Shown one piece after another: positions 10,121-64,000 of a DNA stretch of 64,000 bases. This stretch comes from Bugula neritina (Eukaryota; Animalia; Bryozoa). How positions within the stretch are numbered: position 1 is the first letter of the stretch; each line of letters starts with the position of its first letter. Made by a program: the position numbers and the translations under genes. The stretch lies in contig OZ037767.1 of NCBI GenBank assembly GCA_964035545.1, positions 3,922,707 to 3,986,706 on the forward strand. The letters run 5' to 3'. Under the pieces are notes generated by a model. That model had not been told where the DNA came from, searched no databases, and worked only from the letters and a program-made list of their open reading frames with translations.

Positions 10121-10597
10121 AAGTATATCAAATTCAATAATCAATATGAATACGGATATCAAAGTCAACTGACACTGTCAATGATTATGACAATGAGTAT
10201 CAGTATGAGTTGTTGTACAAAGTCTAATATTGCTGGCATTTGACTTCAAATTGAGTTCAAAACGACAGTTTAATGTTCAGTTTATGGTTAAAGTTTACAA
10301 TGTTATGACTAATTGTAATCACCCAGAGACAGTAATCAATGTCAGTCAAGTAGATTTGATGCTAAAAGTAAATGTAGAGATATTAAAATTTTTGTAGCTC
10401 TTTAGAATGTGATTGCTTTATTTACTATTTAGACGACTTTTCAGCCTACAAGTAGTACTGTTCAAATAGCTGTGATTCTGCATTTACCACGATTTTATCT
10501 TTACAATTCAGCTGCTGGTGTTTGATTTTTGTTGTACTCTACAACTGTAAATTTATTCTTCAACTTTTTGAAAACATCTGATGTTTTTAGAATAGCC

Positions 10598-11862: not shown

Positions 11863-11895
<33 letters not shown>

Positions 11896-37000: not shown

Positions 37001-40000
37001 TGAAACTGATTTATGCTCACAGAAACCATGTCTGAATGGCGGAGTGTGTCAAGCTACAAATGGAGGCTACGAATGTTCGTGTCCAGAAGGGTTTGAGGGA
37101 ACATATTGTGAGGTGAGCTATCGATAACTGAGCCAAGAAATATTTATGAGTATGACTAAAACAAAAAAAGTTTCCAATGGCAACACTGTAATTTCTTGTT
37201 AAGATAAATTATTGATTTTTTTGTGATTTGCAAACAAAAAAAAATTATTTTTTTTAATTGTCTAGTGCTTTAATATAAAAAATAAAATATTTGAGCCAAC
37301 TGAACTATAGTCTTGTTGCTGAAAGAGAAGTTTACTGAATTGCTAAGAGATATTTAACACTGTGTATGCCTGTGACAGGTTGATTTGTGTGGATGTGTCA
37401 ATGGTGGCGACTGCAGACAAACTACACAGGGAAACTATGAATGTGATTGTCCAATAGGATACAGCGGTGCAAAATGTGAATATGATGTCTGTCGAGGACG
37501 CTATACTTGTCAAAATGGAGCCACTTGTAATAGACTAGACGCCAATTCTTTCAGTTGTCAATGTGCTCCAGGGTAGGTCTGAATCTCTACATGTAGGCTG
37601 TAGTTAGGGAGGGGGGCAGATAGATACAAACAGATTATAAGTGTTGAATATATTTGTGAAAAAAGAAGAATGCAATAAAATGGTTCACTTTGCAATGGCA
37701 GCAAAGCTTTATTAACTAATTAATTATAAAACACAAACACAATGCCACTGCAGCTAGACCCAATTCCAGAATTTCTCCAATAAACAATATTTCCCTAGAA
37801 ACTGTAACATCAAGTGTTAATGAGTTACATAAAGCTTCATTTGGCTCTAACATATGTGAAATTGCACTCAAAATCAAAATGCAGAGCATATATTTAAAAC
37901 AATAAGCTCCTTTTAAAGCATGCATTAGAGATGATAGTTGAACCATGGGTATTGACATACATTGAACCTATACCACTCAATCATTTAAGTTATACTGTAA
38001 TTTTTATAGATACACTGGCTTCTTCTGTGATTCGAAAGTGTGCGATTTAAAACCTTGTCTCAACAATGGCGTCTGCAGAGAAAATTTGACTGTTGGAGAA
38101 TATTACACTTGTGCATGTCAGGACAACTTCTATGGAGATCAGTGTCAACATGATCCGTGCAGTGGTAATCTTTGTAAGAATGGAGCTTCCTGTCAGAGAT
38201 TGGCCAATAAAGGGTAACTATAGGAACTTCACTCAGGAGTGACTCTTGTTATTAACTGTTAGTTTCAACTTATATAGTAAATAACATAGAATAAATTTGA
38301 TAAGAAGTTACCACTGCATTTAAGACAAACTAATTACTTTGAAAAAATGGTAAACAGAAATTTCAAGCTAATGTACTAGTGATTAGCAGAGCTTTAAATA
38401 ATGAATATATTTTATAATCTATGAGCAGAAACTATTCAGATAAATCATGATAGTGTATCTTTTTGTAGATATCAGTGTGCCTGTCCTGCTGGATATTCTG
38501 GCAGATACTGTGAAGTCAATCACTGCTCTAACTCCCCGTGCATACAAGGTACATGCGTACCGACTGCTACGAGCTACCGATGTGATTGCTATTCTGGGTA
38601 CACAGGAAGTCGCTGTGAGATAGACGTCTGCTTGCCTAGTCCTTGCGTGAGAGGAATCTGTGTGAGACAAAATGGTGGACAGTTTGTGTGCCAGTGTCCT
38701 GCAGGTATAACTGTGATAGTAGATTTGAGACTATAACCATGGACAAACAGATTTCTAATGTATGCATTGAATCAATGACTTTGATGCAATACTATAAAGA
38801 ATATAGATTATAACAAGCATTTTTGACTATCAATATTTGCATGTCACATGATACCATTTACCTGTCATATCACATAACTTACCTGTCACAAGATGTCATT
38901 GATTTGTCACATGACGTATTTGCTTGCATAGCGTTGGTTGAATTTTGAAAGACAGTTAGTTTACCACTGCCCAATGTATGGTATAGCCTTAAACATGCAT
39001 TTTATTGACAGCTTCTTGAAAGATTATGTTTGTCATTGACTAATTTAATTGCGTAGGCATTACCACCCTCACCTCTCATACCATCATTGATGTTTCTAAT
39101 TTCAGGTTATACTGGGCAGTTCTGTGAGAGAAACATAGATGACTGTACGCCAAATTTGTGCCAGAATGGTGGGAAATGCGTGGACTTGGTAGATGACTAC
39201 AGATGTAACTGTTTGTCCGGGTGGAGTGGAAAGAGGTGTGACATCTCATACTGTGCTTCTAGACCCTGTGACAACGGAGGCACGTGCTCTCCAGCCACCA
39301 ATGCCTTAGGCTACCAGTGTGACTGTCCGCCAGGCTTCAAAGGAGTCAACTGTGAACGAGATGCGTGTAAACCAAACCAGTGTGCACACGGCACATGCAT
39401 GTGAGTAACGGTTTCATCTGTAACCATTCCAACTCACCGCATGCCTGATTTTTACCTCCAAAAGTTTCAGCATAACTCTTTCCATCAGTTTGAAGTTTTA
39501 ATATTTTGCATAGGATGGTTCTCATTTGCTGCCATTAGTTTATCTGTCACACTGCAAGTTGTCAGTATAAAAACCAGTAATGTGTTAAAGAAATAGTTGT
39601 TTGATATCTGTGGTGATATTTTTTTGTCCTTGCACTTGCTTAAATTTTTTGCAATATTTAGTGTTAAAACGCATACTCATGCAATATGAGTTTTTATGCT
39701 GATTCTTGTTTTATATAATAATCAAGATAAAATTCAACTTGTCCCACACACATACACAAAGCTGGAATGCTTTCACTGTAGCAAGAAGTTGTTTCTTTAC
39801 AGAAGGCAAGCAGGGGGAGCATTCAGCTGCGCATGTTACCCTGGATACACAAACTATCTTTGTGATGCTATTGTTGACTACTGCCTGTCCGCACCTTGCA
39901 AGGCTCAAGGCAGATGTGAGGCTGTATTGAATGACTACATCTGTCACTGTCCTATTGGGTGAGCGGTCGTACTCTTTTGTAGCGTAAATTTTTAGATTAG

Positions 40001-43000
40001 CCATAGTTCAAGGTTAATTAAACTTCAGTGTTGTTAGCAAAAACATTCATTTGCCTGCCATAACATTAATAGCAGCATTTGATTTAAATTCAAGTGTTAT
40101 TAGAATAAAGAACTCAATTGCAGATACTCTGGTAAAGATTGCGAGAAGCATGTATGTGACAGCTTGCCATGCAGAAATGGAGGCAGTTGCACAGGAAATA
40201 GTGTGGGAGGGTTTACCTGCTCATGCCCAGATGGATACAGTGGCCATCAGTGTGAGGTAGACGCCTGCAGCCCCAACTTGTGTGTCAACAATGGCAAGTG
40301 TAAGAGAGAGCCTAATGGCGCCTTTTCTTGCGACTGTCCTCAAGGTGAGCATGAGCTGTGATGATGTAAGCATGACTCATTGTGCCAATGAGAGAAATGC
40401 AGACTTTTATGAGTTTAAAATAAAACTGTCAAAAAAGATATCACAGAAGCCTTGAAATATATTTTTATGAAAGAAATAATTAGTTGCAAAAATAGCATAA
40501 CCAAAAGCCGTTTAGTTTACATTTGACTGCCACCCTTTCTTGGCACCAGCTTAACATATTGTAAAGATAGTACTAGTATTTGTTAAGCTTTCTATTCTGT
40601 TTATGCTGTAGAGCAGGGCACAATTAATACAGTGTAGATGCTGCATGCTAGAAAAGTTTCATTTTATACATATTGGTTTTTACATCATGCGAAGGAAACC
40701 TTTAGAAACAATTTATATGCTGCTTTGTTTTTACTAGAATTAAGGGGGTCTATCTGTGACCTATTCCAATTTTGCGGCTGAAATTCTATCAATTTTAGTT
40801 TATTAGAGTCTAGACCTAATGCTAAAACCTACGCTGTCACAAAAAAAGTTAATTAAAGCGCTTTATTATGACAATAATAGAACTGAAAAAAGTAGTAGAG
40901 TAAGAAATCAATTTTTTTTGGCTGTTTATCTTTATTACTATTTAAACAAAACGTGCTTTATAATGTTTCTATTAATTATATATAGCATTACTTTCAATGA
41001 TATCTGTTAATAATAACTTATAGTATATTTAATGGAATAATAAAAAGCTAAAACTGCAGCTTTCTTAGTTGCATTTTTATATTAACATGACAATGCAACA
41101 GTATTTAATTCCTAAAATATGCTTTTGACCTTAAATCTTATTCTTCCAGGTTTCTCCGGAACTACATGCAACATTGACTATTGTTCTTCATCACCTTGTG
41201 AGAATGGCGGCGTCTGCCAACTCTCAAACAATGGCTTCAGCTGTGTTTGCCCTCCAGGATTTGGTGGCAACTTTTGTCAGGTAAAAAGTTTAAACAACTA
41301 TGCAAACCTTTATGTACTCTTGAATGACATGATAATCAAAAGCTACTCACTTTAATTGGCTTTAAATTAAAAATATAAAATAATAGAATATACAAAGGTA
41401 CAAAATGGCTACTTCAGACTATGTATATAAAAAATTTTCCAGCTAATAATTTTAATAGTTCATGTATGAATTTGGGTTATGTGACAGTAAAATTTCACAA
41501 GGTTAGGTTATAATAGCAAATAGCCGGAGACTTTCAAAATTTTTATTTCACTCACTGTCTTTTAGGATGATCTCTGCAAACCAAATCCATGTGGCTCCAA
41601 TGGTGCATGCATTAGACTGAACAGGGACTTTGAGTGTAGATGTCATGATGGCTTCACGGGAGAATATTGTACTAAAGGTGGAGGAGTTATCTTTTCATGT
41701 ACTTGTTTTCAGTTAAATTCATATTTGAAAAATTATTTTAGGCTAAAAAAACTAAAATATTTTACCACAACAATGCTTAGTCAAACATACAGATAAAAGA
41801 TATTTGAAATAAAAAGCTACAATATATTACATTACATAATCAGCATTAGTAATTTATTAGGTCAGAGCAGATTAATCGTACTATATTTACTACAAGCAAA
41901 ATATATTAAACCTAAAAGCCTAAGGTTCATACATATACATATCTATATACATATACATATATATACACACATAGTGTATGTGTATATGTTCAACTTCACT
42001 ACTAACCTTGTTTACTGTTTTACTAACCTATCCTATATAACAAACGCAGATTTGTGTGACCCACTGGTAAACCCATGCATCAATGGTGGACAGTGCATAA
42101 GGCAACCTGGATCCTATCAGTGTGATTGCGCAAAAGGATATGGAGGACCCAACTGTGGCACGGATTTGTGTAAACAGAAAGCTTGCAATACAAACAACAC
42201 TATCTCAGGAATGTGTACTTACACCAAGAAAGGAGACGCTGTCTGTCCATGTGTACCAGGCTACACAGGAGAGCGGTGCCAGGTGGGTGTGGTCATGATG
42301 CTTACTTGTTAAACTAGAAAAGTTTACAAAGTGACAAAGTCTCTCTAGCTTAAAATGATTTAAATTAAGTATCCATTATTATAATTCATGTGCAAAAGAT
42401 ATTCCAGCATTTGCAAAGTAATAGACTACCTTTCAATTTGGTATCAGTTAAATTGGTCAGCTACAAATGCTTTTCATATAACCTAAAAAAACTTCACCAA
42501 CTACTCTTTCTCAGTTATAAAGAAATTTTTTCATACATAACCTAAAAGAACTTAGGACTAATTCTAATTGGCGATTTAAAGCAAGAATTGCAGTGAAAAT
42601 AAACATAAATTCTTTGGTTTGCCTCTATATACAAATAGGCAAGAAATTATAAAAGAACCTGGAATGAAAATAGCATGTTATTCATTGAAAATTTAACACT
42701 TATCAGTATATTATATAGGATATAGGAGATTTAGTATTTGAGTTTCTTCTTTCAGCATGACTTTAATGAGTGTGAGCAGACACCCTATCCGTGTGTTAAT
42801 GGCGCCTCTTGTGTGAACACTCTGGGCTCTTTCTACTGCCTCTGCCAGGATGGGTAAGTAGTTCTTACTACTCCACTAATATCTTGCATATCAGAGCATA
42901 TATATAGCATATTGGGTATTCATAATGTCTAAGCATTAGTACTTTGTCAGTGCCTATGCCACTCTAAATCTTCATAACAGAGACTATATCAACATTTGAT

Positions 43001-46000
43001 TGTGATTTTCACAAAAGACATGATGAACATGCAAAGACAATACTGCTAAGGCTGCTCTTAACGGACAGAAGTTTTCCTTTACACTAAGAGATCTAATACA
43101 TTATCAGATATCATTTACACGAATACTAATTTACAATTCAAGTTCATCTTGATAAAATTATTCATCGAAACTAAAGCATTTGGGAAATATTGTAAAAGCA
43201 TGCAACATAGTGCTAATAAAGGATTTTAAAGATGTATCTACAGTATATCTCTATATTACATGCAGATACACCGGTCTCTTATGCGACCAGAAAGTAAATT
43301 ACTGTGCAACCAAGCCTTGCGCTAACCGTGGAATTTGTGTCAGCAGTGATACTGGATACACATGTGACTGTCCACCAGGATTTAAAGGATCTAATTGTGA
43401 AATTGATGTCTGTAATCTGCCTTCTGTGTGCCTGTAAGTAATGTACTATTTTAAAAGAACTAAAAGCTATTTAGCCAATGATTGCCGCTGTAAGGTCAAT
43501 CAGTAAAAGTTTTTGTTTTAAAAAGGTAGAACTTATTAAGCGAAAATACACAAAATGATAATCGATTCTAGTACATATTATGTTTAGTTTTAGCACCCAA
43601 TGCATACTTATGTTTTTATATAGCACTTCAAGTAAACAGTCTCAAATGAATCTCTCAAACAATATAAATATTATTTTAATGGAAGTAACAGGTTGGAAAG
43701 AGGTTGTTATTACTTATGCTACATTTTTATATTTCAGGAATGGCGCTGTGTGTAACAGATTGCCAGATGGCAAAACCAATTGCACATGCCTACCAGGGTT
43801 TGTTGGAAATAATTGTGAAATTGAGCTCAATGAATGCTTATCAAGACCTTGCCAAAATAATGGTGTTTGCATAGATGGAGTAAACAGCTACAGATGCTCT
43901 TGTCCTCCAGGATACGGAGGAGCTAACTGCCAGATAAACTATTGTAATTCTAACCCTTGCATGAACAACGGGTTGTGTGTTGGTGCTCCAGGAGGTTTTA
44001 AGTGTGTCTGCGTACCTGGTTTTACTGGTAGTATTTGCGAAATAGACATTAATGAATGTGTATCTGACCCTTGTTTAAATGCTGGAATTTGTGTCAATCA
44101 AATTGCTGACTTTTCTTGTGCATGTCCAGCAGGATTTCAGGGCAAACGATGTGACATCGACTTATGCAACTTAAACCAGTGCTTAAATGGAGGAACATGC
44201 AACAGAGTAAATAATAGTGCAGGCTATGACTGCAGCTGTTTACCTGATTTTACTGGGCAAAGGTGTGAAACTAATTTTGATGATTGCATATCAAACCCAT
44301 GTTTTAACTTTGGAATTTGCAAGGATAGAGTCGCATCATATAGTTGTGACTGTCGAGGCGGATACAGCGGTAGCAGATGTGAAATTGATCATTGCTTTCC
44401 GAGTCCTTGCATTCACGGTCAGTGCATAAGAGATTTGCCAGGAAGTCATGATTGCCTGTGTATAGCAGGGTATACTGGAACAAATTGTGACACAAACATT
44501 GATGAATGCGCTTCAGATCCTTGCCTAAATGGTGGTGCTTGCCTGGATGGTATCAACAGCTACCAATGTAAATGCAAAAATGGCTATGGTGGAACCAACT
44601 GTGAAATAGACTTGTGCTCATTAAATATTTGTCAAAATGGAGCAACTTGTATAGGCAAACCTAATGGTACAGAGTGCATCTGTAAAAATGGATACTCTGG
44701 TGATCGATGTGAGATTGATGTTGACGATTGCAACCCATCCCCATGTCTTAACAATGCTCAATGTGTAGATGGAGTAGACAACTACACTTGTAAATGCAGT
44801 GCCGGTTATGGCGGTAAAAACTGTTCCATTGATTTTTGTTCAAGAAACAAGTGTAATAATAATGGTACATGTATTCCTTTGCCTAATGGATCATCGTGCT
44901 CCTGTGAACCAGGTTATACTGGCTTGCAATGTGAAAAGATAATAGATCAGTGCCAGTCATCCCCATGCCATAATGCTACTTGCATCAACAAGCTCACAGA
45001 CTTTGAATGTAAATGTAGAAGTGGCTTCACTGGCAAAACCTGTAATACAAACGTTTGCAAGCCAGAGCCTTGTATGAATAATGGAAAGTGCGTACATACT
45101 TTGAACGGGTTTAGCTGCATATGCATTCCAGGATACTACGGAGAAAAATGTCAGTATAACTACGATGACTGTCAATCTTCACCATGTATTAATGGTCAGT
45201 GTATTGATGGTGTAGATTCTTACACATGTGATTGCAATGCAGGCTACACTGGTCACAACTGTGACATTGATAACTGTACAGCCCTTCCCTGCCAGAACAA
45301 TGGCACTTGTGTGCGTCTACCTTTTGGTTCAAAGTCATGTACATGCCTCCCAGACTACACTGGAGCTTTATGCGAAATACAGATTGACAACTGCCAAAGC
45401 GATCCGTGTCTAAATAATGCTACATGTGTTGATGGCATAAATAATTTTCAATGTCAATGCCCAGGCGGATTCTTAGGGAAAAATTGTGACATAGACTTGT
45501 GTAAAACAAGCAAGTGCCAAAATAATGCAACCTGTGTTGGAGTCCCTGGTGCATACCGCTGCGCTTGTCAGCCAGGTTTCGTTGGAGGCTTGTGTCAAGT
45601 TGAGATTGATGAGTGCTCTTCAAACCCTTGTAGCAATGGTGGTAAATGTAAAGATCTGGTAAATGATTTCCAGTGCACGTGTGCTGCTGGATATACAGGA
45701 AAAACTTGTGATGTCATTATTGATGCATGCGTTTCTCAGCCTTGCTATAATAATGGTACATGTCTAAATTACATCAATAGTTATTCATGTGATTGCCCGA
45801 ATGGTGTTGTTGGAGACCAGTGTGAATTAAACTTATGTAAACAAAATCCATGTATGCATGGTAATTGCCTTCCTGTTAAGGGCGATTACATTTGCGACTG
45901 CCCCAAAGGATATAAAGATAAAAATTGCAGTACCGATATTGATGAATGCTTAAGCGCTCCTTGCCAAAATGGTGGCACATGTACAGATGACATTGGAAAT

Positions 46001-49000
46001 TTCTCTTGCAACTGCGCTGATGGATATTTAGGAAATGACTGTAGCATATATGCTTGCAACCTCAATGGACCATGTGTACATGGAATATGTCAGCCAACTG
46101 GAAATGGTTCAAGGTTCATCTGTAACTGCGATGTTGGATATTTTGGTGAACTATGCAACCAAAATTATTGCAAACCAGACCCATGTATTAATGGCAATTG
46201 TAAAGCACTTGCTACAAATTACACATGTCAGTGTAATTTTGGATACACCGGAAAAGATTGTGATTTAGATATTAATGAGTGTGAACAGTTTCCATGTCAG
46301 AATAATGGAACTTGTTTCAATGAACCTGGGTCATACTCATGCCAATGTTTGAATGGTTATGTTGGAAAGCATTGTGAAAATGACTTGTGCAACCCTGATC
46401 CTTGTAGCAATGGTTTATGTAAAGGAACTGTTGGAAACTATGAATGTGATTGCCAATTTGGATACTCTGGAAAGAACTGTGTCAACTACATTTGTGACAC
46501 TTGGCCTTGTCAAAATGGAAAGTGTATACCAGAAGGCGAATCAAATGGCACGTGTGTCTGCAACGCTGGTTATCAGGGCAAATATTGTGATGAAGACATA
46601 AATGAGTGTGCATCAAAACCCTGTCAAAATGGCGGCAACTGTACAGACTTGCTAAACGACTATGAATGTATGTGCGACAAAGGATATTGGGGTGACAACT
46701 GCGAAAATGATTACTGCAAACCAAACCCTTGCATGCACAACGGAACGTGTGAGGGGTTGACAAATGACTTCTTTTGTAAATGCCAAAAAGGCTACACTGG
46801 TAAAAATTGTTCAATAAATATAGATGAATGCAAAATTTCACCCTGTTTGAATGGAGCACAATGCATTGACACTGACGGTGGCTTTTTTTGTCAATGTACC
46901 CCTGGTTTCAACGGTCTCCTTTGTGATAACAACATTGATGAGTGTCAAAGCAACCCGTGTATCACTGGTAACTGCACAGATCAAATAAATGACTATCAAT
47001 GCTCTTGTCCTTTAGGAATTGTAGGGAAAAATTGCTCAAGAAACTTGTGTTTGCCAGACCCATGTGCGAATGGTGTTTGTATTGGTGTAGACTCTGATTA
47101 TGCGTGCATCTGTGATGATGGTTACGTTGGCAGACAGTGTAATGTCAGCCTGTGTTTAAACAACCCATGTGGATCAAACGGAACTTGTCTTAAAAAACCA
47201 AGCGCGTATGCTTGCAAATGCGACAAAGGTTTTGTTGGAACTAATTGCCAAGATGATTTGTGTACACCAAACCCATGCCAGAATGGAACATGCATACGAA
47301 GTGAAGGAAACTATTCTTGTTCCTGTAATGATGGGTTTTCAGGCGACAACTGTGACCAAGACCTTTGTCCAGCATGTCTCCATGGCACTTGTATGAGATT
47401 GCCTGACAATGCCGTGTGCACTTGTAATGCAGGCTGGAGTGGCCCTAGATGCACTATCAATATTGATGAGTGTTCCAAAATGCCATGTAAAAATGGTGGC
47501 AATTGCACTGACGGAATAGATGATTTCAGTTGCCAGTGCTTGGATGGTTACACAGGTAAAGATTGTGGACTTGATCTTTGCCTTACAGCGAATTGTCAAC
47601 ATGGAACATGTAATCGCCATCCAGGAGGAGCTAACTGTACTTGCAACCCTGGGTTCGGAGGAAAGCAGTGTTCAACCAATATTAACGAATGTTCATCTAA
47701 TCCATGTTTGCAAGGAGATTGTATTGACCTGATAAATGACTTTAAATGTGATTGCAATGATGGTTTCTATGGAAAATATTGTGAAAATGACTATTGCAAT
47801 GGTACAGTTTGTAATAGTGGAAACTGTGAACGAAAGCCTGACAATTTTACTTGCAATTGCTTTAGTGGCTTTATGGGAGAAAAATGCGAAACAAACATTG
47901 ATGACTGTAGCCCTAACCCATGCAAAAATAATGCAACCTGCTCTGATTTAGTTAATGGATTTTTATGTGATTGTTTGCCTGGTTTCTCTGGTAAAACCTG
48001 TAATGAGAATTTATGTGATCCATCTCCTTGCGTATTCGGAGAGTGTGTGCCAGTTTTAGGAAGTTACAAATGTAATTGCACTGAAGGTTATGGAGGTATA
48101 AACTGTGACACTAATATAGATGATTGTAAACCTAGTAGTTGTAAAAATGGAGGTACTTGCTTTGACGGGATCAACAGCTTTAGTTGTCAGTGTTTAGATG
48201 GGTTTTCTGGATCCACTTGCACTGTAGATGAATGTAGAGCTAATCCCTGCATAAATGGTGACTGTCAAAAAACTCCTGGAAACCGGACCTGTTTGTGTTA
48301 CTCTGGTTATGTTGGAGACTCTTGTCAGATTAATTATGATGATTGCCAAAATGATCCATGTGAAAACAATGGAACATGCATAGATCAAGTAAACGGATAT
48401 GTATGTAAATGCGAAAAAGGGTTCACAGGTCAAAATTGCAATGTAGACTTATGCAAACCTGATCCATGCAACAACGGCAAATGCCTACGAGAAGACAGTA
48501 GCTACAGCTGTTTGTGTGAGGCAGGCTGGTTAGGTCCACACTGTCAAGTTGATATAGATGATTGTCACAACATGCCTTGTAAGAACAATGCTACATGTTA
48601 TGACAAAGTCAATGGCTATGACTGTGCATGTATCCCTGGCTTTGGAGGCTTCGATTGCTCTGTAGATTTATGTAACCAAACTAACTGCGGATTAAATGGT
48701 ATCTGTTTGCCACAGAACTACAGCGCAACTTGTCAATGCAACGCAGGCTACACTGGAAACTCTTGTGAAACAAACATAAATGATTGTGTCAACCATACTT
48801 GCCAAAATGGAGGCATCTGTGTTGATGGGATTGAAAGTTACGCTTGTGCTTGTCCAGATGGAATGGTTGGCACATATTGTGAAACTAACTTATGCCAGCC
48901 TTCTCCATGTAAAAATGGAGTGTGCAATGCACTTCCTGGAAACTACAGTTGTAGCTGTCATGCCGGATATGAAGGTTATCATTGCGATATAAATATTGAT

Positions 49001-51092
49001 GATTGTGCTGCATCACCATGCGCAGCAGGGCGTTGCGCCGATTTGGTGAATGGATTCCACTGTTTCTGTCCAAAAGGAAGAGTCGGTGACAGATGTGAAA
49101 CAGATCTGTGTTCTCCATCACCCTGTGTTAGGGGTATGTGTCAACATGAAGTTGGAAACTTTAGTTGTCAATGCCCACCTGGATTCACAGGGAGGTTATG
49201 TGAAACTGATATCAACGAATGTTTGACTGCTGGATGTTCCGATAACTCTACATGCATTGACAAAATCAATGGATTTTATTGTGATTGCAACGAAGGTTTC
49301 ACGGGAACTACTTGTTCAATTGACCTTTGTGACCCATTAAACAACCCTTGCGCATTTGGTACATGTGAACGTCAAGACGGCAACTTTTCTTGTAACTGTG
49401 ACACTGGCTATACCGGAAGAAGATGCACGACTAATATAGATGACTGTTTACCAAGCCAATGTGTAAATAATGGAACCTGCATTGACCATATTGGAAATTA
49501 TAGTTGCAGCTGTTTACCAGGATATGGTGGAAGAAATTGTGAAATTGATTTCTGCGAAGCACCTAACCCTTGTTTGAATGGGATGTGTGAAGGCATTGAT
49601 GGAGGATTCAAATGCACTTGCCTAGCTGGCTACAGAGGAGATAAATGCGAGATTGAAATAGATGAATGTGAAAGTGATCCTTGTCAAAATAATGGTACAT
49701 GCATTGATGAAGTTGACAACTATTCGTGCATTTGCAAAGCAGGATATAGTGGCAAAAACTGTCAAGTGGATGCGTGTCAAGTTGATCCATGCCGTAACCA
49801 GGGTGTTTGCATTCGCCAAACAAACGGCTCAAGATCATGTCAATGTCAACCAGGCTATGAAGGTGATAATTGCAGTGTTGATACTAATGAGTGCAAGTCT
49901 GATCCGTGTAAGAATGGAGGCATCTGTATTGACAACATAAATCACTTTACCTGTTCCTGCAAACCTGGTTATAGTGGAGCCCAGTGCCAACAGTCAGTTT
50001 GTGACGCAAATCCATGCGGTGGAAAAGGTAACTGCACAGTAGGAGGAGCTGGACAGCCACTGTGTGCCTGCCACTTTGGATTTGAGGGGGACAAATGTCA
50101 GGTATGTAATACTAAAATACTAGCAAAAAGTTAGCATTATAATTCAAATTATATTGCTTGTCATTAGGTTTACATAATGAAAATATTTAATTACTTGGCA
50201 AAGCATGGTGAACAAAGGACCTCAGGCTAATTGGTGCCAAGTGTTTAATTTTCATTGAAGAGTGAATAGAGGCAAGAAAAATCTTTAAACTCACTATATA
50301 GTGAGTTTAAAGATTTTTCTTGCCTCAAGTTACTATATTATAGTAACTTTTATTGTTATACAACTATTAATGATTCTACCAAAGGTTATGCCTGCTTGTA
50401 GGTAATTAATAACCAGTGTGCTCTGTTTACCTGTGAAAATAATGGAACATGTAAAGGGGACCGATATGAAGCAGTATGTACATGCGAGAAAGGGTACGGA
50501 GGACTCAATTGTGAGAAGGTGAGAAAACACAGCCATTAATGAAGGCTTAAATGTTTAAATGCAAACACTATCATATTTCGGATTTGCTGTCAGAATGTTA
50601 CCAACATTAATCTTTTAATAATATACATAGATTTTCAAACATATTGTAAGCGCTTCAATCTAGCTAGCAATATCTTTGTACATATTGCTTGCAGTAAAAG
50701 TGCATGGATTATACAGCCAGAAGAGAGTTTTGTGTTCTGAAAAACAGTGCAAGAAGCACTGTAATAATTTAACAGCTAAATCTGCAAAAAGCAAAATTTT
50801 GAGTAGCTAGTTAGATGATTTTTTTTTAGAAAGCAACCTGAAGATGTGCACAAAGCACTATGTAGTATAATAGGTAAAGTTTCCATTCTAGTTTTATAAC
50901 TACATCAATGTGATATTGCAGCAAGTGTGTGAGACCTGTATTCGGCAAGGCAACACATATCAGGCCCAGGATGGAACAGGCTGCAAATCCTATCAAGAGA
51001 ATTTTGTAACCAAGGATTGTCCTCCTGGCCTGACATTCAATGCTAAGAGATGTGCTTGCATTGGAGACTACCTGAACACATGTGGTTGCTAA
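28071..51092 (+). CDS. Giant secreted multi-EGF-repeat (fibropellin/Notch-ectodomain-like) protein, ~3,782 aa, 28 exons, C-terminal chitin-binding type-2-like Cys motif
   Basis: Exons: 28071-28130 (signal MKLILLVTLAAVLIASGYSL), 29231-29312, 29724-29787, 30790-30941, 31309-31476, 31816-31929, 32225-32287, 32678-32851, 33337-33447, 33779-33947, 34481-34719, 35377-35617, 35981-36135, 36256-37112, 37379-37572, 38010-38213, 38469-38704, 39106-39400, 39803-39958, 40124-40344, 41150-41280, 41566-41677, 42050-42282, 42756-42853, 43266-43433, 43738-50101, 50402-50518, 50922-51092. Sum 11,349 nt, in frame. Continuous 6-Cys EGF repeats; no TM, LNR or ankyrin region. AATAAA at 51182 and 51212. Confidence 0.9.
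29452..29589. mobile_element. Short imperfect inverted-repeat element (MITE-like) in EGF gene intron 2
   Basis: aatggaatgttattacagcct ... aggctgtaataacatttcatt, with further partial complementarity inside. Confidence 0.55.
30155..30373 (-). mobile_element. tRNA-derived SINE-like element
   Basis: Minus strand starts GAGCAGCCGTGGTCTAGGGGTTATAGCAC (A-box-like) ... GGGTTCGAGACCC (B box), followed by a non-tRNA body (GGAAGAGCATCCAGTC...). The 3' end is approximate. Confidence 0.6.
34110..34207. repeat. 7-bp-unit degenerate tandem repeat (ttgccaa/ttgctaa/tagccaa)
   Basis: Directly visible in the EGF gene intron. It gives the spurious LAISNWQ ORF. Confidence 0.75.
43738..50101 (+). CDS. 6,364-nt exon 26 of the giant EGF gene (roughly 55 EGF repeats)
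   Basis: Core of ORF 43580-50134, bounded by acceptor atttcag and donor gtatgt. Confidence 0.92.
50269..50326. repeat. 58-bp perfect palindrome in the intron after the giant exon
   Basis: gaggcaagaaaaatctttaaactcactat|atagtgagtttaaagatttttcttgcctc, no spacer. Confidence 0.92.
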
Positions 51093-52038: not shown

Positions 52039-55000
52039 TTAATCGGTTTTCCTTGATTTGTTCTTTACTGTATTCCTTGTGCTACTTGTGCTAGTTTTTG
52101 ACCTGTAATAAGCAACAATATAATAAATTATTGCAATAATATTTACATTATGATATATTATATTGTAGCATATTGTGAATATTAATATAATATAGTACTA
52201 ATATGTACTTACACAGCAAACTAGCTGCTAAAAGTTATGTTTCTTTTAGTTTATCAACATAGTATTTAAAAAAACATATAAATTAAAAGGGATGTGGTAA
52301 GGAGACCCAATGGGTTATTATATTATAATACTATACTACTTCAACAGTGAATATCAGTCAAATATAGATACTATCTGACAATACGTGAGAGACATATAAC
52401 ATAGACTGAGAGACATATAACATAGACTGAGAGACATATAACATAGACTGAGAGACATATAACATAGACTGAGAGACATGTAACATAGACTGAGAGACAT
52501 ATAACATAGACTGAGAGACATATAGACTGAGGGACATATAACATAGACTGAGAGACATATAGACTGAGGGACATATAACATAGACTGAGGGACATATAAC
52601 ATAGACTGAGAGACATATAACATAGACTGAGAGACATATAACATAGACTGAGAGACATATAACATAGACTGAGAGACATATAACATAGACTGAGAGACAT
52701 GTAACATAGACTGAGAGACATATAACATAGACTGAGAGACATATAGACTGAGGGACATATAACATAGACTGAGAGACATATAGACTGAGAGACATATAAC
52801 ATAGACTGAGAGACATATAACATAGACTGAGAGACATATAACATAGACTGAGAGACACCAACCTGGCTTTGACCATGGCTTCCTTCACCACTTCGTCTTC
52901 CCGCACATCATCCACCTCCGTCATCTGCCCAGTCGCTACTTTGAACAGGAAGTAAAGTATGAACTACAATAATGAGACATTACGCTATCACAATGCCCAC
53001 AACAACCATTATTTTCGAAACTGAAACCCTAGTGTGGCACTCAAAAGTTTGCTTAAAAGTACAATACTCGTAGCTATAAAGTTTCCAAACCAATTCCTGT
53101 GAAAAAAGTTCATGTTGAATAAAGAAGACAGTTTTCTCTTACCATAAACCAGTAGATGTTCATTGCTTGTAGAATCCACAGCATAATGTTGAAGAAGAGA
53201 TAAAATGGCAGGTGATTGGTCTGTTGGTGACGAATCATAGAGCTATACCCAGTGCTGTGCAGAACTTTCAAGGGCAACCAATACAGTCTAAACAAGTACC
53301 TACGAACAGGAAGTATAACACTGCAGCTGCACACGCATACAAAAAGCATACAGCTCCAGTCAATGCAGCAAATATAGGCTAACAAAATTTTTCCGTTGCA
53401 AAACAATTCAAATAAATCTGTATAGCAAGACTTTTTGTCATTAAAATACAATACATAGCTAAAGTTTAACACCACCCTCTATTGATAAAGCAGCAAGTAT
53501 CAAATTACAAGTACAGGAGTTGCCTTCTCTATATTTTATAAACAACATTGAGCAGACAACTTCAAATATATAATTAAAACTATAGCACAGGTGTTATGCC
53601 GTTACTACATGCACTTTACACTGCACATAAAGCATAATAAACTAAGCTTGAATTTTGACCTTTAACCTAGTAAAGTACTTTTACACACAAACTGTACACA
53701 ACCAGATGGTATTAAGATTAGTAGTAACTATTAGTGCTCACTAGTAACTGTTAAATTATAAACAGTATAATTAAATTAGTCAAAAACACAAGTGCAAAAA
53801 TATAATAGTAGCTTCAAATACAAGAAAATATAGCTGATGGAAGAGACAGAGTGAGAATAACTCCAACTTCTGAATATGAAGTGTATACTCACATAACCTA
53901 CCAGAAAATAGCGAATACCACAAATCCAACATTAGACATGACTTCATTGAGCCAGTGGAACTGGCCACCCCTACTCTTGAAATATACGTTGACTTTGGTG
54001 AACTCTAAAGCTATGTCGGTGACATCATGAACGAATAGCACCATCAGCCCAATCTTGTGGTACCTGAAAATGTAAGGATTTGGTACACAGAGCAGTCAAG
54101 ACAATACTGATGGGGAAACAACTCCCAAATGGTTTACTTTTCAGTCAATGCTTCAAAAGCAAAATCATGTTCGTTCAGTCTCCTCCACCCCTGTGAGAAC
54201 CCCTGGAGGCAAGTGGTGTACGTGGCACAGGGGCAGTTATGTTCTCTCTCCGTGACACTAGCACTGGACCTGTTAAGATTCGAACTTGAAGTAACCTAAC
54301 CACTGGACCACAGCTGTTCTCTTACGGTTCGGGAGAAATTTGAACATAAATTGAAATAAATAAATATTTTTCAGCTTCAGAAGCCTCTTCTATACATTTG
54401 TTTAGTTTATGGTAACGCATATACATGTATGTGTAAACAATGACAAAACTGTAGCCCTTTTTTCATATTCAAGACAAAATGACTGCCTGCCTATATTCAA
54501 AATTGAATAACCTAGGTTCTAAGACAAGAACAGCTAAAATTCATACTTTTTCATTTAACTATTTCATCAATGAATAAGACCCCAGTCTATTAAAACCCGC
54601 TGGGTAAAGTCTAAACCAAATAAACATACCAGCTATTGTGTTGACAACGCTTGCCAGCTACAAATGAAAGCACTCAGGGTAAACAATAAGGCGTACAACC
54701 TTTATTATAAAAAAAAAACCACTAAGAAAGTTAAACAAAAGTAGACAAACAATTGAAAGAGCAGTGAAAGTGAAGAAAATTGGCCGATCAATTTTGTGTT
54801 TATTCACCCTAACACTTTGGTTAGGAGAAAAGCAGTAGCATAAAGTTGACCTGCTAAACCCATTATCAATCACCGCTGCTCGTGTAATCTAGTAAACCCA
54901 CGGCCTTATCTGAAACTTTGTAGATTGTGTCTAAGATATGAAATTTAGACTTTACATGTAACATAATATAAATAAAACTTAAAATAAGTAGAATTTTATT

Positions 55001-58000: not shown

Positions 58001-59759
58001 ACCATCAAAGACCAGTCTTTTGTTAGTACAGTTCAAGTACATACAAGTTTAAGAATAATTATATTGTAGACTGAGAAAATTATTGACGAAAACTATTATG
58101 CTGAGGTTATTGACCAGGCCTACATTCACCTACTAATGTAGACTAAGACCATAATTTATTGTTGGGGGAAATAGTTAGGACATTTACCGATTATAAGTTG
58201 AGATATTAACAACATAGCAAAAGCAATTTGTCAAAGCATAGTGCTAAAACTAACTCTACTAATCTATTTATAATGAGAAACGTAACATAATTACACCTTT
58301 TATTCAACAATATTAATCTGATGTAATCAAATATGAGTGAGATCAAAAAGACATTAATAGTTTTCAAAAAACATTCTCAACCAGCATAACTAATACCTGT
58401 GGTGAATTGTGGCGTAGTTAATACTGTGGCTAGACTACCAACAAACTACAAGTTAGTTGCAATCATAACAAACTATGCTCTACTACTAAACTTGTTGATC
58501 TATGGAGTGTAAAATTTAGGTTTAGTAACAGCACGAGTTATGAGTGAGTTATCAGTATGAGTTAGAAATAAAATAGTATTAGTAAAAAAAGAAGATAAAT
58601 TAAAATTTATATTTAAATTGAATAAAATTTAACAAAATATATAACATCTGTTTTTATTTTAACTATATTACTAGTATAATTAATAGTAGCAATAAATAAA
58701 ATACCTCATATCAACTGTAACACAGTACAATAGAACTAATAAAAATAAATCATAAATGTGCCTAGCTATTCCTATACAAGTTGTAATAAAAATTACTAGC
58801 TAATGTTACTTAGAAAACTTTGTAAATTTTAAAATGATTTTAATGAATCATTATATTATAAAGATCAAATTTTACATCCTAGACCTCGAGCATGTACTTA
58901 GCTTTCACTTTGAATTCACGATCGTAACATCATAATTAAGTCATGATTATTAATATTATAATCAGCCAAAATGAAGATTCCCATAAGTCAGTACAGTACT
59001 TTATCTTGAAATCTAATCAGTAATAATCATAATCATAATCATAATCATAATGTTTAACTTTATCATATTGCAATTATTTATATTTTCATTTTGCCTATCA
59101 ATAACTATAAGTAATTATTACCATAACAAGAATTAGCATTGGTACTGGTACGAGATATATCTTTAGAGTAGAAGTCGCACCCTCACAATCAGTATTGGCT
59201 ATTGTTATCGTTAACAATTAAATACATGAATGCCACTATTAAATTTAATATCACTATGTACTTGTAGTATGACTATATACTAATACTCACGCCATATTCT
59301 TAAACTTGAGTAATACTAATAACTTGTACTTATAAGTATAACTTTAACTAATAAACTTTAAGTCAATAACTAATAAATAATAACTTTAGGTTTAAGTAAA
59401 CTTAAAATTAAATCGCTTAAACTTAAAGTTATTAATATTGAATTTGATAATCCATACTCAATCTGAATACTCTTTAGGAGTAGGTTTACGTAAATTATTA
59501 AACATACCTGAAATACAGCAAAGGTTAACGCATATCGTAAGATTGTCCATAAAACTGCCAATCCAACAATGACAGCTAAATCCCAAACTTCAAAATAGGG
59601 TAAAGCATATTTTTGCAAGTCTTTAGAAAATGTTTGAGGGGAGAAATCGTTTACATTTGAGTACCAATATTCTAAGCCCCATTTTATATCATAACATGTT
59701 TGCGTATATGAAGGAACGCCATTTGTGGCAAAAGAGTAAAACCCGCTTATATATTCCAT
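52039..59759 (-). CDS. CERS1: Ceramide synthase 1 (LAG1/TLC domain, no homeobox), 360 aa
   Basis: Exons 59759-59508, 57214-57049 (DAKKYPESAWKLLVY), 56400-56220 (RKDTGLMLFHHFLTISLIGFSY), 54063-53902 (YHKIGLMVLFVHDVTDIALEFTKVNVY), 53299-53143 (WYLFRLYWLPLKVL...MNIYWF), 52963-52863 (KVATGQMTEVDDVRE) and 52102-52039. 1,083 nt. The Lag1p motif HH and HD residues are intact, and the motifs match the CerS1 type. Confidence 0.93.
52386..52857. repeat. 21-bp minisatellite (gagagacatataacatagact) with 14-bp deletion variants, CERS1 last intron
   Basis: More than 20 near-identical copies starting a few bases from the exon 6 donor. Source of the three repetitive minus-strand ORFs. Confidence 0.95.
54150..54319 (-). 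mobile_element. Degenerate tRNA-derived SINE-like element in a CERS1 intron
   Basis: Minus strand GAACAGCTGTGGTCCAGTGGTTAGG...GTTCGAATC (A and B boxes). The head resembles the element at 30373 (GAGCAGCCGTGGTCTAGGGGTTA). Confidence 0.45.
55590..55660. repeat. Three copies of a 23-bp unit (gtgtcaacctgatagtaagaaat)
   Basis: Directly visible. Confidence 0.75.
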
Positions 59760-60976
59760 TTATGAAAAGTATGCGGCTCCTTCAACTCATCAAGAGGAGT
59801 TTCAGTTTGATTCTGTTGGTAAGAAAAATTGAACTTCCCAACAACCTTAGTCTAATATCTATAAAATTATCTGTAACAAGGTTGTTGTAAACATGTAGTA
59901 CAACTTATTTGCGTGCATGTTTATTACTACGCAAGTTAAGAAGTTGTAAAATTTATTATTTTAGTCAAACAACTCCAAATATACCTACAACTCCATTCGC
60001 AGCGCTGAAAACCATTCCAATTAATATCAGCGCCTTTTAAAATTGTAGAGAGATGATAAATCTGCGTTTATATTGACCTTTATTGCAAATTGCTGTTTTC
60101 AGACAGCTATAATTATAATAAAAATACGTTTTAGTTATTATTAAGCAATTCAACAATAAAATAATTATTAGCAACTATTTGAATTTTAGCCACTGGCACA
60201 TACAGGTGAGATAAATATGTTTTAATATACATGTATATCATGGTTATGCTCATATCTGCTTTTTATTTATCAACTGTAATGATTTTGCAAAGCATCTATA
60301 TTTGTGATCTTATTTTATTAGCATTATTTTGACACCTGTGCAATAAAAATGTTAATGTTTTCAAAATATGATGTTGAGAAATTCCCTAACTAGAAGTGAT
60401 TTATACATTCTTCCTATTTACTGACTGGTAATTTTAACCCGCCTTGTACTGTCACCTATAGAGCAAAACTTTCAGTATATCATGTAAGAGTAAGCAAAAT
60501 GTTATACTCTAATTTGTATATACTTCGAATAAATTCTCGTATAATATGCTTTTGTATCTAATTTGGGATAATATATAATTTTGCATAATATAATATTCTG
60601 ATAATATAGAGCTTCATCTAATATTAACAATTATTTAATATAATTATTATTTATATAGAAAAGAATAATCACAACTCTTTATTTTCTATTTAATGAAATA
60701 AAAACTATAATTGTATATATGACGCTATAATAGGCTTTATAAAGTAAAACCTTGATACTAGCTAATAAACTGTTTCTACATATTGCAATGATCTGTCCAT
60801 CAGTATGCCGTTGTTAGATACAAAGGCATGCATACCAAGAGTTATCTATAAGCCACGTAGCATTTCAAAGTCGATCCTAAACTGAATATAAAAATTTTAG
60901 GGCTTATAGCTGACCAAGCCTTGTTTTTAATGTTCAATTGAGCATTAAATACAAGCAATCCTATAAGCTTTTGCTT

Positions 60977-63690
60977 CTACATTACAACACATTTGTCTTT
61001 CATAGAATCCACTGGTGCACTCTTAGTTCTGTGTAAGGAGTTGCTCTAAAAATAACAAAGTAAAGCTGTGTGGCAGTTTATACTTTGCAAAATAATAGCC
61101 ATATGTGCTTAAAAATTATCTGAATGAAATAGAATTTAAAAAATAATCATGAACTATGCAATAACAGCTGCTAATAAATCACAAAAAGGTACACAGTAAT
61201 TTAAATGGTATAGTAAATAGTTATATGTATGGTTTAATAGGGAATAATAATGTAAAGATTCTTACTCGTCGTAATGTTGATTTGTGAGTACAATGCTTAT
61301 CACATCCTGCTTTTAACTTATTGCTGTCACTTTTACTTTTATGAGCTGTTTTTTCTGCAACAGAATTATAATTAATTTACGTAATATGCTTTCTATTCAA
61401 ACTTATTATGATAGTTAAGTGATCTACATAATGATATATTGTGATACACTTTTATTGTTCTATATTATGACATACACATGCACATCCTGATAAACAAATA
61501 GTTATTCTTTGACAAAGTAATGTATATAAAATTATTATAAATCTTTGCACATAAGTTTTTGAAATATAAACTAGAAATAAATAGATTTTCACTAACCCTG
61601 GCGCATTTTCTTATGTGTTCTCTTCTGAGCATCTGACACCCACCTGGCAGTGCTTGAAGATGAGCACCTTGCAGACCTGCCACCTCTTTCTACAGAATAA
61701 TATAATTAATGAAGCCTTAAATAGAACTAAGTTTGAAGATCTCCAGTTTAAAAAGTTATATTTAAGCAAAGTTAGAGTTCATGAAATTACATTGTGACAA
61801 TTTGTGAGAATATGACATGCATTGACAACATGAAGCTAGAAATATTGCACCAGGCTAACTTAAGACACCTAATTTTATATTTAAACCCACCTATATAGAC
61901 TTACATTTCAAAAACTGATCTTCATGTATGACACCTAAATTTTGATTGTAAGATTTCTGCAAAATTTAAAACTTATGATTCATATGTTTGCTCAAAGTTA
62001 TTATCTTACTACGTTCTCGCGATGCAATGGATGTCCCAGAGTTGGAATTTATTGTAGTCTTAGATATCGATTTTGACTTTTGGCAAGAAGGGCGGGTACT
62101 TGAACGCCTCCTATTTATTTGATGATTGCTGACACTTTTCCATAAGTCTGTTAGCTACATTAACATGGAATTGTATAACTGTGATGATAATTCGTACAAT
62201 TTCAAAACCCTATAGTACCTGTTTTCAAAGTAATTCACATTGAAAAAAAAACTATGCAGACTGCATGCAACTGGAACGGCTCTTTTTAAAGCAAAATGTG
62301 GCTGATTTCTAATAAACATATAAGAAACATTTTTGAAACGAAATGGAACTTTAATAGAAATTATATATGTCACACCTACCATTGAAGCAACGCTCCTTGG
62401 AGATTTCCCAGAGGATAAAATTGACGCAGCGGATTGTGATAATGCAGGTAGTGAACTGAGAAAATTACAAAACAACTTTGCATGTTTTATCAATATATTA
62501 TAATATATACTTTAATATAAAAATATGCCAATTTCTTTAATGTATTTTATTCATGTTTATCGCACAATAAAATAATTTAAATGTTAAGTGTGTTAAATGT
62601 TATTATATATTATTTGCTTCACTGCACTAACTGAAAATAACAGTACTAATATTAATGCCACAAGATACTATCTTTAACATCACGACTTCTCTGTTTAAAA
62701 ATACAAAGATTTTGTACTCTGAAGTTTGAATTAAAAAAAAATTTGCAAGTAATTGCTGTATATATAATATTACGTCACCATTATCTTCATTTAACCTAGA
62801 TTGAGAGCATAAATAACTGATTACCCTAAAGAAGTTTACAGAGTTTAAAATTTAAATGAACAACTCTGTAGTTACAGCTTGACTTTGAACATATGGCATT
62901 GAGCATGAAGCATTGTCATTGCTTGCTTGGCAAAATAGTTTATGTAATTATTAATATAAATAGATAGTAACTTAATAGTCTAGTCACTCTAGAGCCTAGA
63001 GTCTAGAATGTATATAGGTATTAAATCTTTTTCCTAAAATATTGAAGTTTACTGACATAGGGTACTTTGCAAAATATGCTGATATAGTGACTTCAATTCT
63101 ATTTACAAACAAACAATGCAAAATATGTTGCTATTCAAGCTTGTCAAAACTATTATAATATATATACGTAATATAGAATTATTACATAGTTATATATATA
63201 ATATATTGTTTCATAGTTACCTTCTCCTGCTAGAAGCTCTCCTTTGACAAGATGGATCACTTCTGCTTTTTGCTAAACTTATTGTACTTCTACTTTTTCT
63301 TCCAGCTTTACTTATTCCAAGCCGTCGTCTTTAAGAGAAATACATTTCATAATTATAACAAGTATTCCTAATTGTCAAACTTCATAACATAACATAAGTA
63401 CCTATGCTATAGTGTAGTAGCACTAAAGCATACCCACACGCACGCGCACGCATACACACGCACACACGCACACACGCACACACGCACACACGCACACACG
63501 TAATAACTGACCTGTGAAGAATACACCGAAGCTCTTCTGTATTGTTCTCTACTTTACAACGAGATTGTAAAAGTTTGAATGTGTCGAGGTCAACTGGCTT
63601 CAACCGTAGCAACTCATTCAGATGTGTAAAGCATCTGTATTTACAGCGATATTTTACTATTGCATGGACTGCCTTTGTGGGAACTTTAAG
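60977..63690 (-). CDS. 3' part (252 aa) of a protein with a ComEA/HHH_3-like helix-hairpin-helix motif, a basic Ser/Arg/Lys-rich tail and a C-terminal CaaX box; 5' exons not found in the window
   Basis: Exons 63690-63512 (LKVPTKAVHAIVKYRCKYRCFTHLNELLRLKPVDLDTFKLLQSRCKV), 63328-63221, 62455-62380, 62154-62010, 61689-61597, 61354-61266 and 61045-60977 (SNSLHRTKSAPVDSMKDKCVVM*). All introns GT-AG with compatible phases, 759 nt. Confidence 0.75.
63435..63500. repeat. (CA/CG)n-type microsatellite (cacacg units)
   Basis: Directly visible next to the donor of the HhH exon. Confidence 0.85.
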
Positions 63691-64000
63691 CTGAAAACAT
63701 TCCAAAAATATTTTAATACTTTTAAAGCAATATTCCTTTGCAGCAATCGTATGACAGCAATAAAACAATTTCAAATATTAAAATGAAATGCTAAGCGCAT
63801 GCCTGATTGGACACCATTTTTATAATATGTCATTATTTAAAAAGCACTGTTGGTATGCTTTTTTTCACAAGATCAAAAGTTTATTGTTAGCATTGGCACT
63901 TTTTATTTAATATGAAAATAGTTTCATTGCCTTCATGAAATATACGTTTGTGAAACAGATACAAAATGCAAATAAAATATTTGGAAAACAAAAAAACTTT

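Follow-up and report, generated by a model that had tools for sequence, protein, structure and literature searches.

Farnesylated proteins are few and come mostly from a handful of families. Those known at the nuclear envelope are the lamins and rare lineage-specific cases such as Kugelkern. Helix-hairpin-helix (HhH) units of the ComEA type, described by the Pfam family HHH_3, occur in ComEA, Tex, EEPD1, KIF22 and TEFM, and to our knowledge none of these proteins ends in a CaaX box. Here we describe a gene in a stretch of 64,000 nucleotides from the bryozoan Bugula neritina (GenBank assembly GCA_964035545.1, contig OZ037767.1, positions 3,922,707 to 3,986,706 of the forward strand), which is called the window throughout. 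The seven exons of this gene in the window, on the minus strand from 63690 to 60977, encode the greater part of a very basic, largely disordered protein with one divergent HHH_3 unit and a predicted farnesyl anchor. The protein would hold chromatin or nucleic acid at a membrane, the inner nuclear membrane being the likeliest, and the probability that we give to this reading is roughly 0.55.

The likeness to the ComEA-type units consists in a single unit of ~60 residues with the same helix pattern and a common core, [VI]-D-[IL]-N-T, A..I..YR, F....EL and T-F..L. The present protein differs from them in that the Gly-hydrophobic-Gly hairpins are missing, the Pfam match is sub-threshold and the structural model does not retrieve their structures. 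By Pfam scan, and for the upstream part in the DNA of a related species, it has neither the signal or transmembrane anchor of ComEA nor the EEP nuclease of EEPD1, the motor of KIF22 or the pseudonuclease of TEFM.

At the nuclear envelope, barrier-to-autointegration factor (BAF), a small DNA binder of HhH-like type, connects chromatin with the envelope, and the N-terminal Arg/Ser region of LBR binds chromatin under regulation by phosphorylation. Both are compared here by analogy only, and they reach the membrane via LEM partners or transmembrane helices, not via a lipid. Kugelkern, which is not known to have an HhH unit, would be the functional analogue of our preferred reading, a likeness of description only, given that the location of the present protein is a prediction. 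In Drosophila, this insect-specific protein without lamin homology is held at the inner nuclear membrane by its C-terminal farnesyl (PMC10660854). With N-Ras the present protein shares the identical tetrapeptide CVVM, and with B-type lamins a box that ends in Met. Unlike N-Ras, K-Ras4B and the lamins, it has no GTPase or intermediate-filament domain in Pfam and, unlike the two Ras proteins, neither a palmitoyl Cys nor a polybasic run beside the box.

We know of no named protein in which a single divergent unit of the ComEA type is combined with a disordered, basic tail and C-a-a-M. An earlier note on this DNA, made from the letters only, had said the same of the HhH-basic tail-CaaX architecture, and indeed none turned up in protein or literature searches; no paper was found that joins a helix-hairpin-helix with a farnesylated CaaX protein. 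As a combination the architecture has not been described before, and all its component parts are of known kinds.

A spliced gene kept in two species

The exons are bounded by canonical GT-AG signals and read in minus-strand translation of 60900-64000 as one continuous frame ending in CVVM-stop, with consistent phases, as the earlier note had proposed. Exon 1 (63512-63690) has 179 nucleotides between the acceptor ttttcag and the donor CACAG/gtcagt, is entered in phase 0 and left in phase 2, and carries the pattern A-x-x-A-I-V-K-Y-R...F...ELL.L..V...F..L that had been pointed out. It is followed by exon 2 (63221-63328; 108 nucleotides, phase 2 to 2), which is basic and Ser-rich with K-S-R-S-D-P at 63253-63270, and by the Ser/Ala-rich exon 3 (62380-62455; 76 nucleotides, phase 2 to 0), which ends in RSVASM. 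Exon 4 (62013-62154; phase 0 to 1) has 142 nucleotides, or 145 with a donor at 62010, and starts with L-T-D-L-W-K before turning rich in Ser, Arg, Lys and Thr. The best-kept motif of the tail, SSSSTARWVSDAQKR, lies at 61619-61663 in exon 5 (61597-61689; 93 nucleotides, phase 1 to 1). Exon 6 (61266-61354; 89 nucleotides, phase 1 to 0) is rich in Lys, Ser, Cys and His, ends in L-R-R, and has a good acceptor, ctgttgcag, and the donor CGA/gtaaga. The last exon, exon 7 (60977-61045), is entered in phase 0 through the acceptor ttgttatttttag, in which 12 of 15 positions are pyrimidines; it comprises 22 codons and the stop, with the CaaX box C-V-V-M at 60980-60991 and TAG at 60977-60979. An ATTAAA at 60926-60931 on the same strand, 45 nucleotides past the stop, is a possible polyadenylation signal, which is weak evidence in AT-rich DNA.

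Some of these junctions were settled by comparison with a related species (see below). The donor of exon 3, ATG/gtaggt at 62380, was picked by homology with RSMASL/gtatgt of the relative, and the acceptor of exon 4, tgtag/CTAACA at 62154, was fixed by the relative's ctgtag/ATCAGC (I-S-R-L-W-R); an initial placement of the exon 3/4 junction at 62376/62147 was dropped after this comparison. The two donors of exon 4, 62010 and 62013, have equal scores and equal phase, which leaves that junction uncertain by one codon. The peptides quoted in the earlier note were all recovered: RRRLGISKAGRKSRS and RRASSRRS across split codons, NRRRSSTR, and KDKCVVM-stop at the end. KRGGRSAR is present provided that the donor of exon 4 is 62010, the other donor being equally good.

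Because exon 1 has an acceptor at 63691-63693 and is entered in phase 0, the gene continues past the window edge. Nothing exon-like was seen in the 310 bases between exon 1 and base 64000, and the first coding exon lies beyond that base. No paralogue of the gene was found within the window. Intron 1 holds a perfect (ACACACGC)x6 microsatellite at 63454-63500, which lengthens the raw open reading frame (ORF) that holds exon 1.

The exons were searched one by one, and exon 1 (59 residues) was compared with 1.8 billion representative proteins. Five matches were obtained, and the best was P0001, an 82-residue ORF from metagenome contigs, which spans the whole of exon 1 at 54% identity and ends at the same L-H-R. 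The contigs that carry it (L001-L005, L006-L009 and L010) are 96-100% identical to one another, and judged by this identity they belong to one species or a tight species group. The window's own contig has its only relatives among such environmental-assembly contigs; its G+C content is 28-41% and its introns are short. One of the relative's contigs, L009, carries the complete gene, an exon with the ATG (R0, 4737-4886) followed by seven exons with intron phases identical to those of the window at every junction. It follows from the identical phases that all exon-length differences between the two species are multiples of three. Exon 1 of the relative also has 179 nucleotides and the same acceptor and donor positions, and the two exons align at 56% identity. 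Its last exon likewise has 22 codons in phase 0 and ends in C-I-L-M-TAA, which was seen in 4 contigs from 4 samples, and an AATAAA lies 64 nucleotides past its stop. From position 3540 onwards, L001 departs from the relative's other contigs within intron 1, either by an insertion polymorphism (GTTCAAAAC-like repeated ends) or by an assembly break.

The exon pairs of the two species were aligned singly and compared with 500 shuffles each. The similarity is strongest for exon 1 (z 21) and exon 5 (z 8.6, with tblastn E ~1e-6 to L007, L008 and L009), and it is also clear for exon 2 (z 4.3); none of the 500 shuffles reached the score in these three cases. Five shuffles did so for exon 7 (z 3.1, 5 of 22 residues identical) and five for exon 4 (z 2.7), where the similarity is marginal. 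The pair of exon 3 is not significant by sequence alone (z 1.6, 39 of 500 shuffles), and in exon 6 position and phase are kept and sequence is not (z 1.2, 66 of 500). Among the contigs of the relative, variants were counted at 10 of 990 exon sites and at 104 of 2385 intron sites, about four times fewer in exons (Fisher 9e-8), and 6 of the 10 exon variants are synonymous. Neither species has a frameshift or a stop in the frame. This pattern is that of a gene under purifying selection, as read from the variants and the comparison, and not of a chance frame. We regard it as practically certain that the minus strand here carries a genuine spliced gene that codes for a protein.

A third species with the gene was not found by word-index search, in bacterial and archaeal genomes or among viral contigs. 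The word-index search with the exon 1 alignment, over proteins 45-143 residues long, a range too short for a protein of ~330 residues, returned only the known fragment P0001, and exon 1 is absent from the annotated proteins of the searched sets.

The HhH-like unit, the basic tail and the CaaX box

The best match of exon 1 in both species is Pfam HHH_3 (PF12836), with 18 bits and E 0.0032 over profile positions 24-62 of 65 in the window and 21.2 bits and E 0.00031 over positions 28-58 of 65 in the relative. The exon corresponds to the C-terminal two thirds of one HHH_3 unit together with a conserved extra helix, EELR..LH. Among the non-orthologous matches of exon 1, three of four are bacterial proteins made of tandem ComEA-type units, and one such repeat protein has, by eye, an apparent EEP-like C-terminus. 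When a profile of the two orthologous exons was aligned by hhalign with 14 of these bacterial units, a probability of 97.4% and E 1e-11 were obtained over 45 columns, in which residues 3-47 of exon 1 correspond to unit positions 17-61. In the relative, the end of the upstream exon, K-V-D-I-N-T-C-S-M-T-S-M-R-K, aligns to unit columns 1-13 and stops almost where exon 1 starts; filling the first 13 columns in this way, it completes, on this alignment, one whole HHH_3 unit that a phase-0 intron divides. As modelled by AlphaFold (pLDDT 75), exon 1 has a helix pattern equal to that of a genuine unit, and the hydrophobic core positions are well kept. The solved relatives of the matching bacterial units are EEPD1, ComEA, Tex, a ComEA-related protein, KIF22 and TEFM.

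The resemblance to the HhH of ComEA and EEPD1 suggested by the earlier note thus stands as homology at the level of profiles (hhalign 97.4%), and it does not extend to the hairpin glycines, to a Pfam score above threshold or to the fold search, which was negative. On these comparisons, we take the unit, which lies near the N-terminus of the protein, to be a divergent homologue of HHH_3 in which the canonical DNA-contact loops are gone.

The frame continues after exon 1 for ~190 residues, ending 193 codons on. As the earlier note had seen, this tail is rich in Ser, Arg and Lys, with 45 Lys and Arg, 8 Asp and Glu and 44 Ser in 188 counted residues. Over the 247 counted residues of the window's protein, 57 Lys and Arg stand against 14 Asp and Glu; in the 326 of the relative, the counts are 84 and 27. 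The tail is very basic, largely disordered and of low complexity, and none of the six exons after exon 1 matches any Pfam family. Short islands are nevertheless kept between the species. These are R-S-[VM]-A-S-[ML] at the end of exon 3, [IL]-[ST]-[RD]-L-W-[RK] at the start of exon 4, S-S-S-S-T-A-R-W-V-[ST]-D-[AV]-Q-K-R in exon 5 and, at the same place in exon 2, K-S-R-S-D-P in the window and R-S-K-S-D-P in the relative. R-S-x-pS-x-P is the mode-1 consensus of 14-3-3 proteins; as a sequence motif only, the relative has it exactly and the window has K-S-R-S-D-P. Basic clusters that resemble nuclear-import signals are R-R-R-K-K, R-R-R-R and K-R-L-K in the relative and R-R-R and K-R-T-H-K-K in the window.

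At the end of the protein, C-V-V-M-TAG at 60991-60977 places a Cys fourth from the C-terminus, with the stop directly after the box. Among the 2779 open stretches of at least 15 codons in the window, exon 7 alone ends in C-[VILA]-[VILA]-M, an ending that is improbable by chance. A CaaX box is present in about 1-2% of proteins (PMC11152559). The two boxes compared here both have two aliphatic residues and Met, V-V-M in the window and I-L-M in the relative, and are preceded by residues that are not polybasic (SMKDK and DDGDT). Since the remainder of the last exon has diverged around a box that was kept, selection seems to have acted on the box itself. CVVM is the box of N-Ras, and when assayed in humanised yeast it served as a substrate of human farnesyltransferase (FTase), no shift being seen without the enzyme; the lamin-type boxes CAIM and CSIM were examined in the same study (PMC11152559). 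Because the window's box is identical to that of N-Ras, farnesylation is strongly predicted, and the Cys is probably farnesylated in vivo. The assignment of CaaX ending in Met to the substrates of farnesyltransferase, made in the earlier note, fits both CVVM and the CILM of the relative.

A proposed membrane tether and the competing readings

The sequence of events that we favor is as follows. FTase would farnesylate the Cys, the last three residues would be clipped and the Cys methylated, and the lipidated C-terminus would then be anchored in a membrane from its cytosolic or nucleoplasmic side. Whether or not the HhH-like unit takes part, the basic tail would hold a polyanion, for which chromatin or nucleic acid is the most plausible candidate, and a net charge of ~+43 to +57 would be expected to bind DNA, RNA or nucleosomes regardless of that unit. 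The inner nuclear membrane would be the likeliest site, because no strong polybasic run stands at the Cys and clusters resembling nuclear-import signals lie farther up. Phosphorylation, for which there are many RRxS sites of the basophilic-kinase type as well as R/K-S-x-S-x-P, and perhaps 14-3-3 binding, might switch the attachment on and off. The parts of this scheme are not equally secure. Binding to nucleic acid or chromatin is about an even prospect, and the location at the nuclear envelope, put forward tentatively, is less likely than not. The fullest version, in which a small disordered protein with a remodelled HhH unit and an Arg/Ser tail ties chromatin to the inner nuclear membrane without lamins, farnesyl-anchored and released in mitosis by phosphorylation (possibly with 14-3-3), appears unlikely as a whole.

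The earlier note had also offered a membrane-anchored DNA receptor. A ComEA-like receptor for external DNA is unlikely, because a farnesyl group places its protein on the cytosolic or nucleoplasmic side of a membrane and not outside.

Several observations weigh against the favored reading. Both Pfam scores lie under the gathering cut-off of 27 bits, the exon holding a part-unit. Gly-hydrophobic-Gly hairpins are the DNA-backbone-contacting hallmark of HhH motifs, and in both species L-K-[VI]-P and [PS]-V-D stand in their place. Across the 14 bacterial units the Gly of the second hairpin is invariant and its partner is present in at least 90%; some of these units also lack the Gly of the first hairpin. 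Foldseek with the exon 1 model against the PDB found no HhH structure, the best hit being the C-terminal domain of RNA polymerase alpha at E 2.5. A genuine ComEA unit trimmed to the same columns retrieved TEFM, KIF22, the ComEA-related protein and Tex (probability 0.95-0.99, TM 0.68-0.76), and the success of this control makes the negative search informative even for a cut domain. Searches of PDB sequences by phmmer and with the two-sequence profile of exon 1 gave nothing meaningful. The hhalign score is partly circular, the bacterial units having been chosen for their match to exon 1, and the E-values of the matches to exon 1 are flattering, since a non-HhH repeat protein, P0004, likewise reached E 7e-8. 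Moreover, the gene is known from two species only, and use of the last exon is deduced from its conservation only. With the hairpins replaced, the Pfam scores sub-threshold and the fold search negative, DNA binding through the HhH-like unit, as the earlier note had it, is doubtful.

P0004 itself has 252 residues in four near-identical repeats (...KPEDVPSLNLSGLSGPCKFEYNTQESKC...) and matches residues 19-56 of exon 1. It is not an HhH protein and was set aside, its match being probably due to the summing of repeats.

The same observations feed the strongest competitor, which is less probable than the favored reading and still has to be reckoned with. Here the protein would be a phospho-regulated peripheral scaffold of the plasma membrane or endomembranes that does not bind DNA, its degenerate HhH serving protein contacts and its farnesyl and basic clusters resting on acidic lipids. 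The replaced Gly-x-Gly hairpins in both species are what such a protein would show, as is a fold search in which the control finds HhH structures and exon 1 does not, and the many basic clusters and Ser sites with the conserved R/K-S-x-S-x-P would suit its regulation. Eukaryotic HHH_3 units such as that of TEFM, moreover, need not be the DNA-binding part of their protein. Against a scaffold of this kind stand the residues before the Cys, SMKDK and DDGDT, which are not polybasic as in the plasma-membrane signals of the K-Ras4B type, the well-kept hydrophobic core of the unit, and the charge of ~+43 to +57 on a disordered chain, which would bind nucleic acid anyway.

The membrane anchor that the favored reading shares with the scaffold would be lost if the gene were real and its CaaX unused, transcripts having another last exon or the Cys escaping prenylation in vivo. 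The poor sequence conservation of exons 6 and 7 would allow it, and the polyadenylation signals are weak evidence in DNA so rich in AT. We consider it improbable nonetheless, given that in each species the last exon has 22 codons, is entered in phase 0 and closes with C-aliphatic-aliphatic-Met-stop, the rest of it having diverged, and that CVVM is a proven FTase substrate in N-Ras (PMC11152559).

A known family was the alternative that the earlier note itself had named. The seven exons would then encode only the C-terminal end of something larger, such as EEPD1 or a KIF22-type chromokinesin. The window stops 310 bases upstream of exon 1, and an HhH unit of this type is present in both KIF22 and EEPD1, which leaves room for this at first sight. 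The relative supplies the upstream region. Within the 4.7 kb upstream of its first coding exon lies, on the same strand, a complete cornichon gene (three exons, Pfam profile positions 4-122 of 122, L009 139-1477 (+)), which ends 3.2 kb upstream of the ATG exon, and neither a kinesin or EEP exon nor any other domain above threshold was seen in the open stretches between the two. A possible acceptor, 16 codons ahead of the ATG in the relative, would fit a larger protein, and a small further coding exon may exist there. The protein of the relative most likely has ~330 residues and starts with M-P-Q-T-K, and the product of the window's gene would have roughly 300-340. With cornichon upstream and no motor or nuclease exon, we read a protein of ~330 residues, not the tail of KIF22 or EEPD1. 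Neither of these was among the matches of exon 1 in the 1.8 billion proteins, and no tail exon matches any Pfam family. Taken singly, EEPD1 was rejected as no EEP domain follows the HhH-like exon and the six following exons have no Pfam match. A KIF22-type chromokinesin was rejected as no motor exon occurs in the 4.7 kb, a result that concerns the relative only, and a lamin as no Pfam match to rod or lamin tail appears in the tail exons, the chain being of low complexity and basic. A larger known protein is accordingly very improbable.

In the same upstream DNA of the relative, an ORF of 175-191 codons on the opposite strand (P0006, L009 3763-4335 (-)) lies ~400 base pairs ahead of the ATG exon. 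Among 5.8 billion proteins no homologue of this ORF was found; it may be an orphan gene or a spurious ORF, and is of no help with the 5' boundary. Farther up, exons of a proteasome-type AAA ATPase were seen in L010 at 8090-8302 and 12090-14232.

That there is no gene at all, only chance open stretches or a decaying pseudogene, can be all but dismissed. In favor of it, exon 1 is in no annotated public protein, and the pairs of exons 3 and 6 lack significant similarity. Against it, seven in-phase junctions are kept between species whose best exon is only ~55% identical, the frame is free of frameshifts and stops in both, and variants are four times rarer in the relative's exons than in its introns.

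Other features of the window and significance

The gene that follows downstream on the same strand contains a TLC-domain exon at 53113-53475 (-) (PF03798, E 6e-6), and a 129-codon ORF at 59370-59759 (-), which has no Pfam match, is perhaps its first exon. A single open exon of 2184 codons at 43580-50134 (+) encodes EGF and calcium-binding EGF repeats of a fibropellin- or Notch-like kind, one piece matching Pfam EGF at E 8e-29, and further EGF exons lie upstream of it at 34446-42312. A tandem array at 52386-52857, with ~23 copies of a 21-bp unit (or 2 copies of a 221-bp unit), creates three long artefactual ORFs (MSLSLCY...). Two ORFs, 10529-10864 (+) and 15240-15566 (+), are similar to each other (...YRVP..[IV][RK]G[VL][AV]K[LV][ST][VI].D.P.D.QA..V.F.G...), which suggests two exons of duplicated genes, and they match no Pfam family above threshold. 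Two low-complexity ORFs without Pfam match were noted as well, one with long Leu and Pro runs at 11532-12020 (+) and one of 132 codons, rich in K-G-Y/S-K-G, at 22482-22880 (+). A match to the Rfam tRNA family at 1458-1530 (-), with 38 bits, was not called by ARAGORN and may be a tRNA-derived repeat or a degenerate tRNA.

The analysis adds a conserved multi-exon gene that is absent from public protein sets. Should its HhH-like unit prove inert, the finding would shrink to an orphan prenylated basic protein that the bryozoan shares with one relative, whose homologue keeps both the HhH-like unit and the CaaX box. If the favored reading is true, the protein would offer a simple model for tying chromatin or RNA to a membrane without lamins or transmembrane partners, and a non-lamin link of this kind at the inner nuclear membrane would be an independent invention parallel to Kugelkern of Drosophila.

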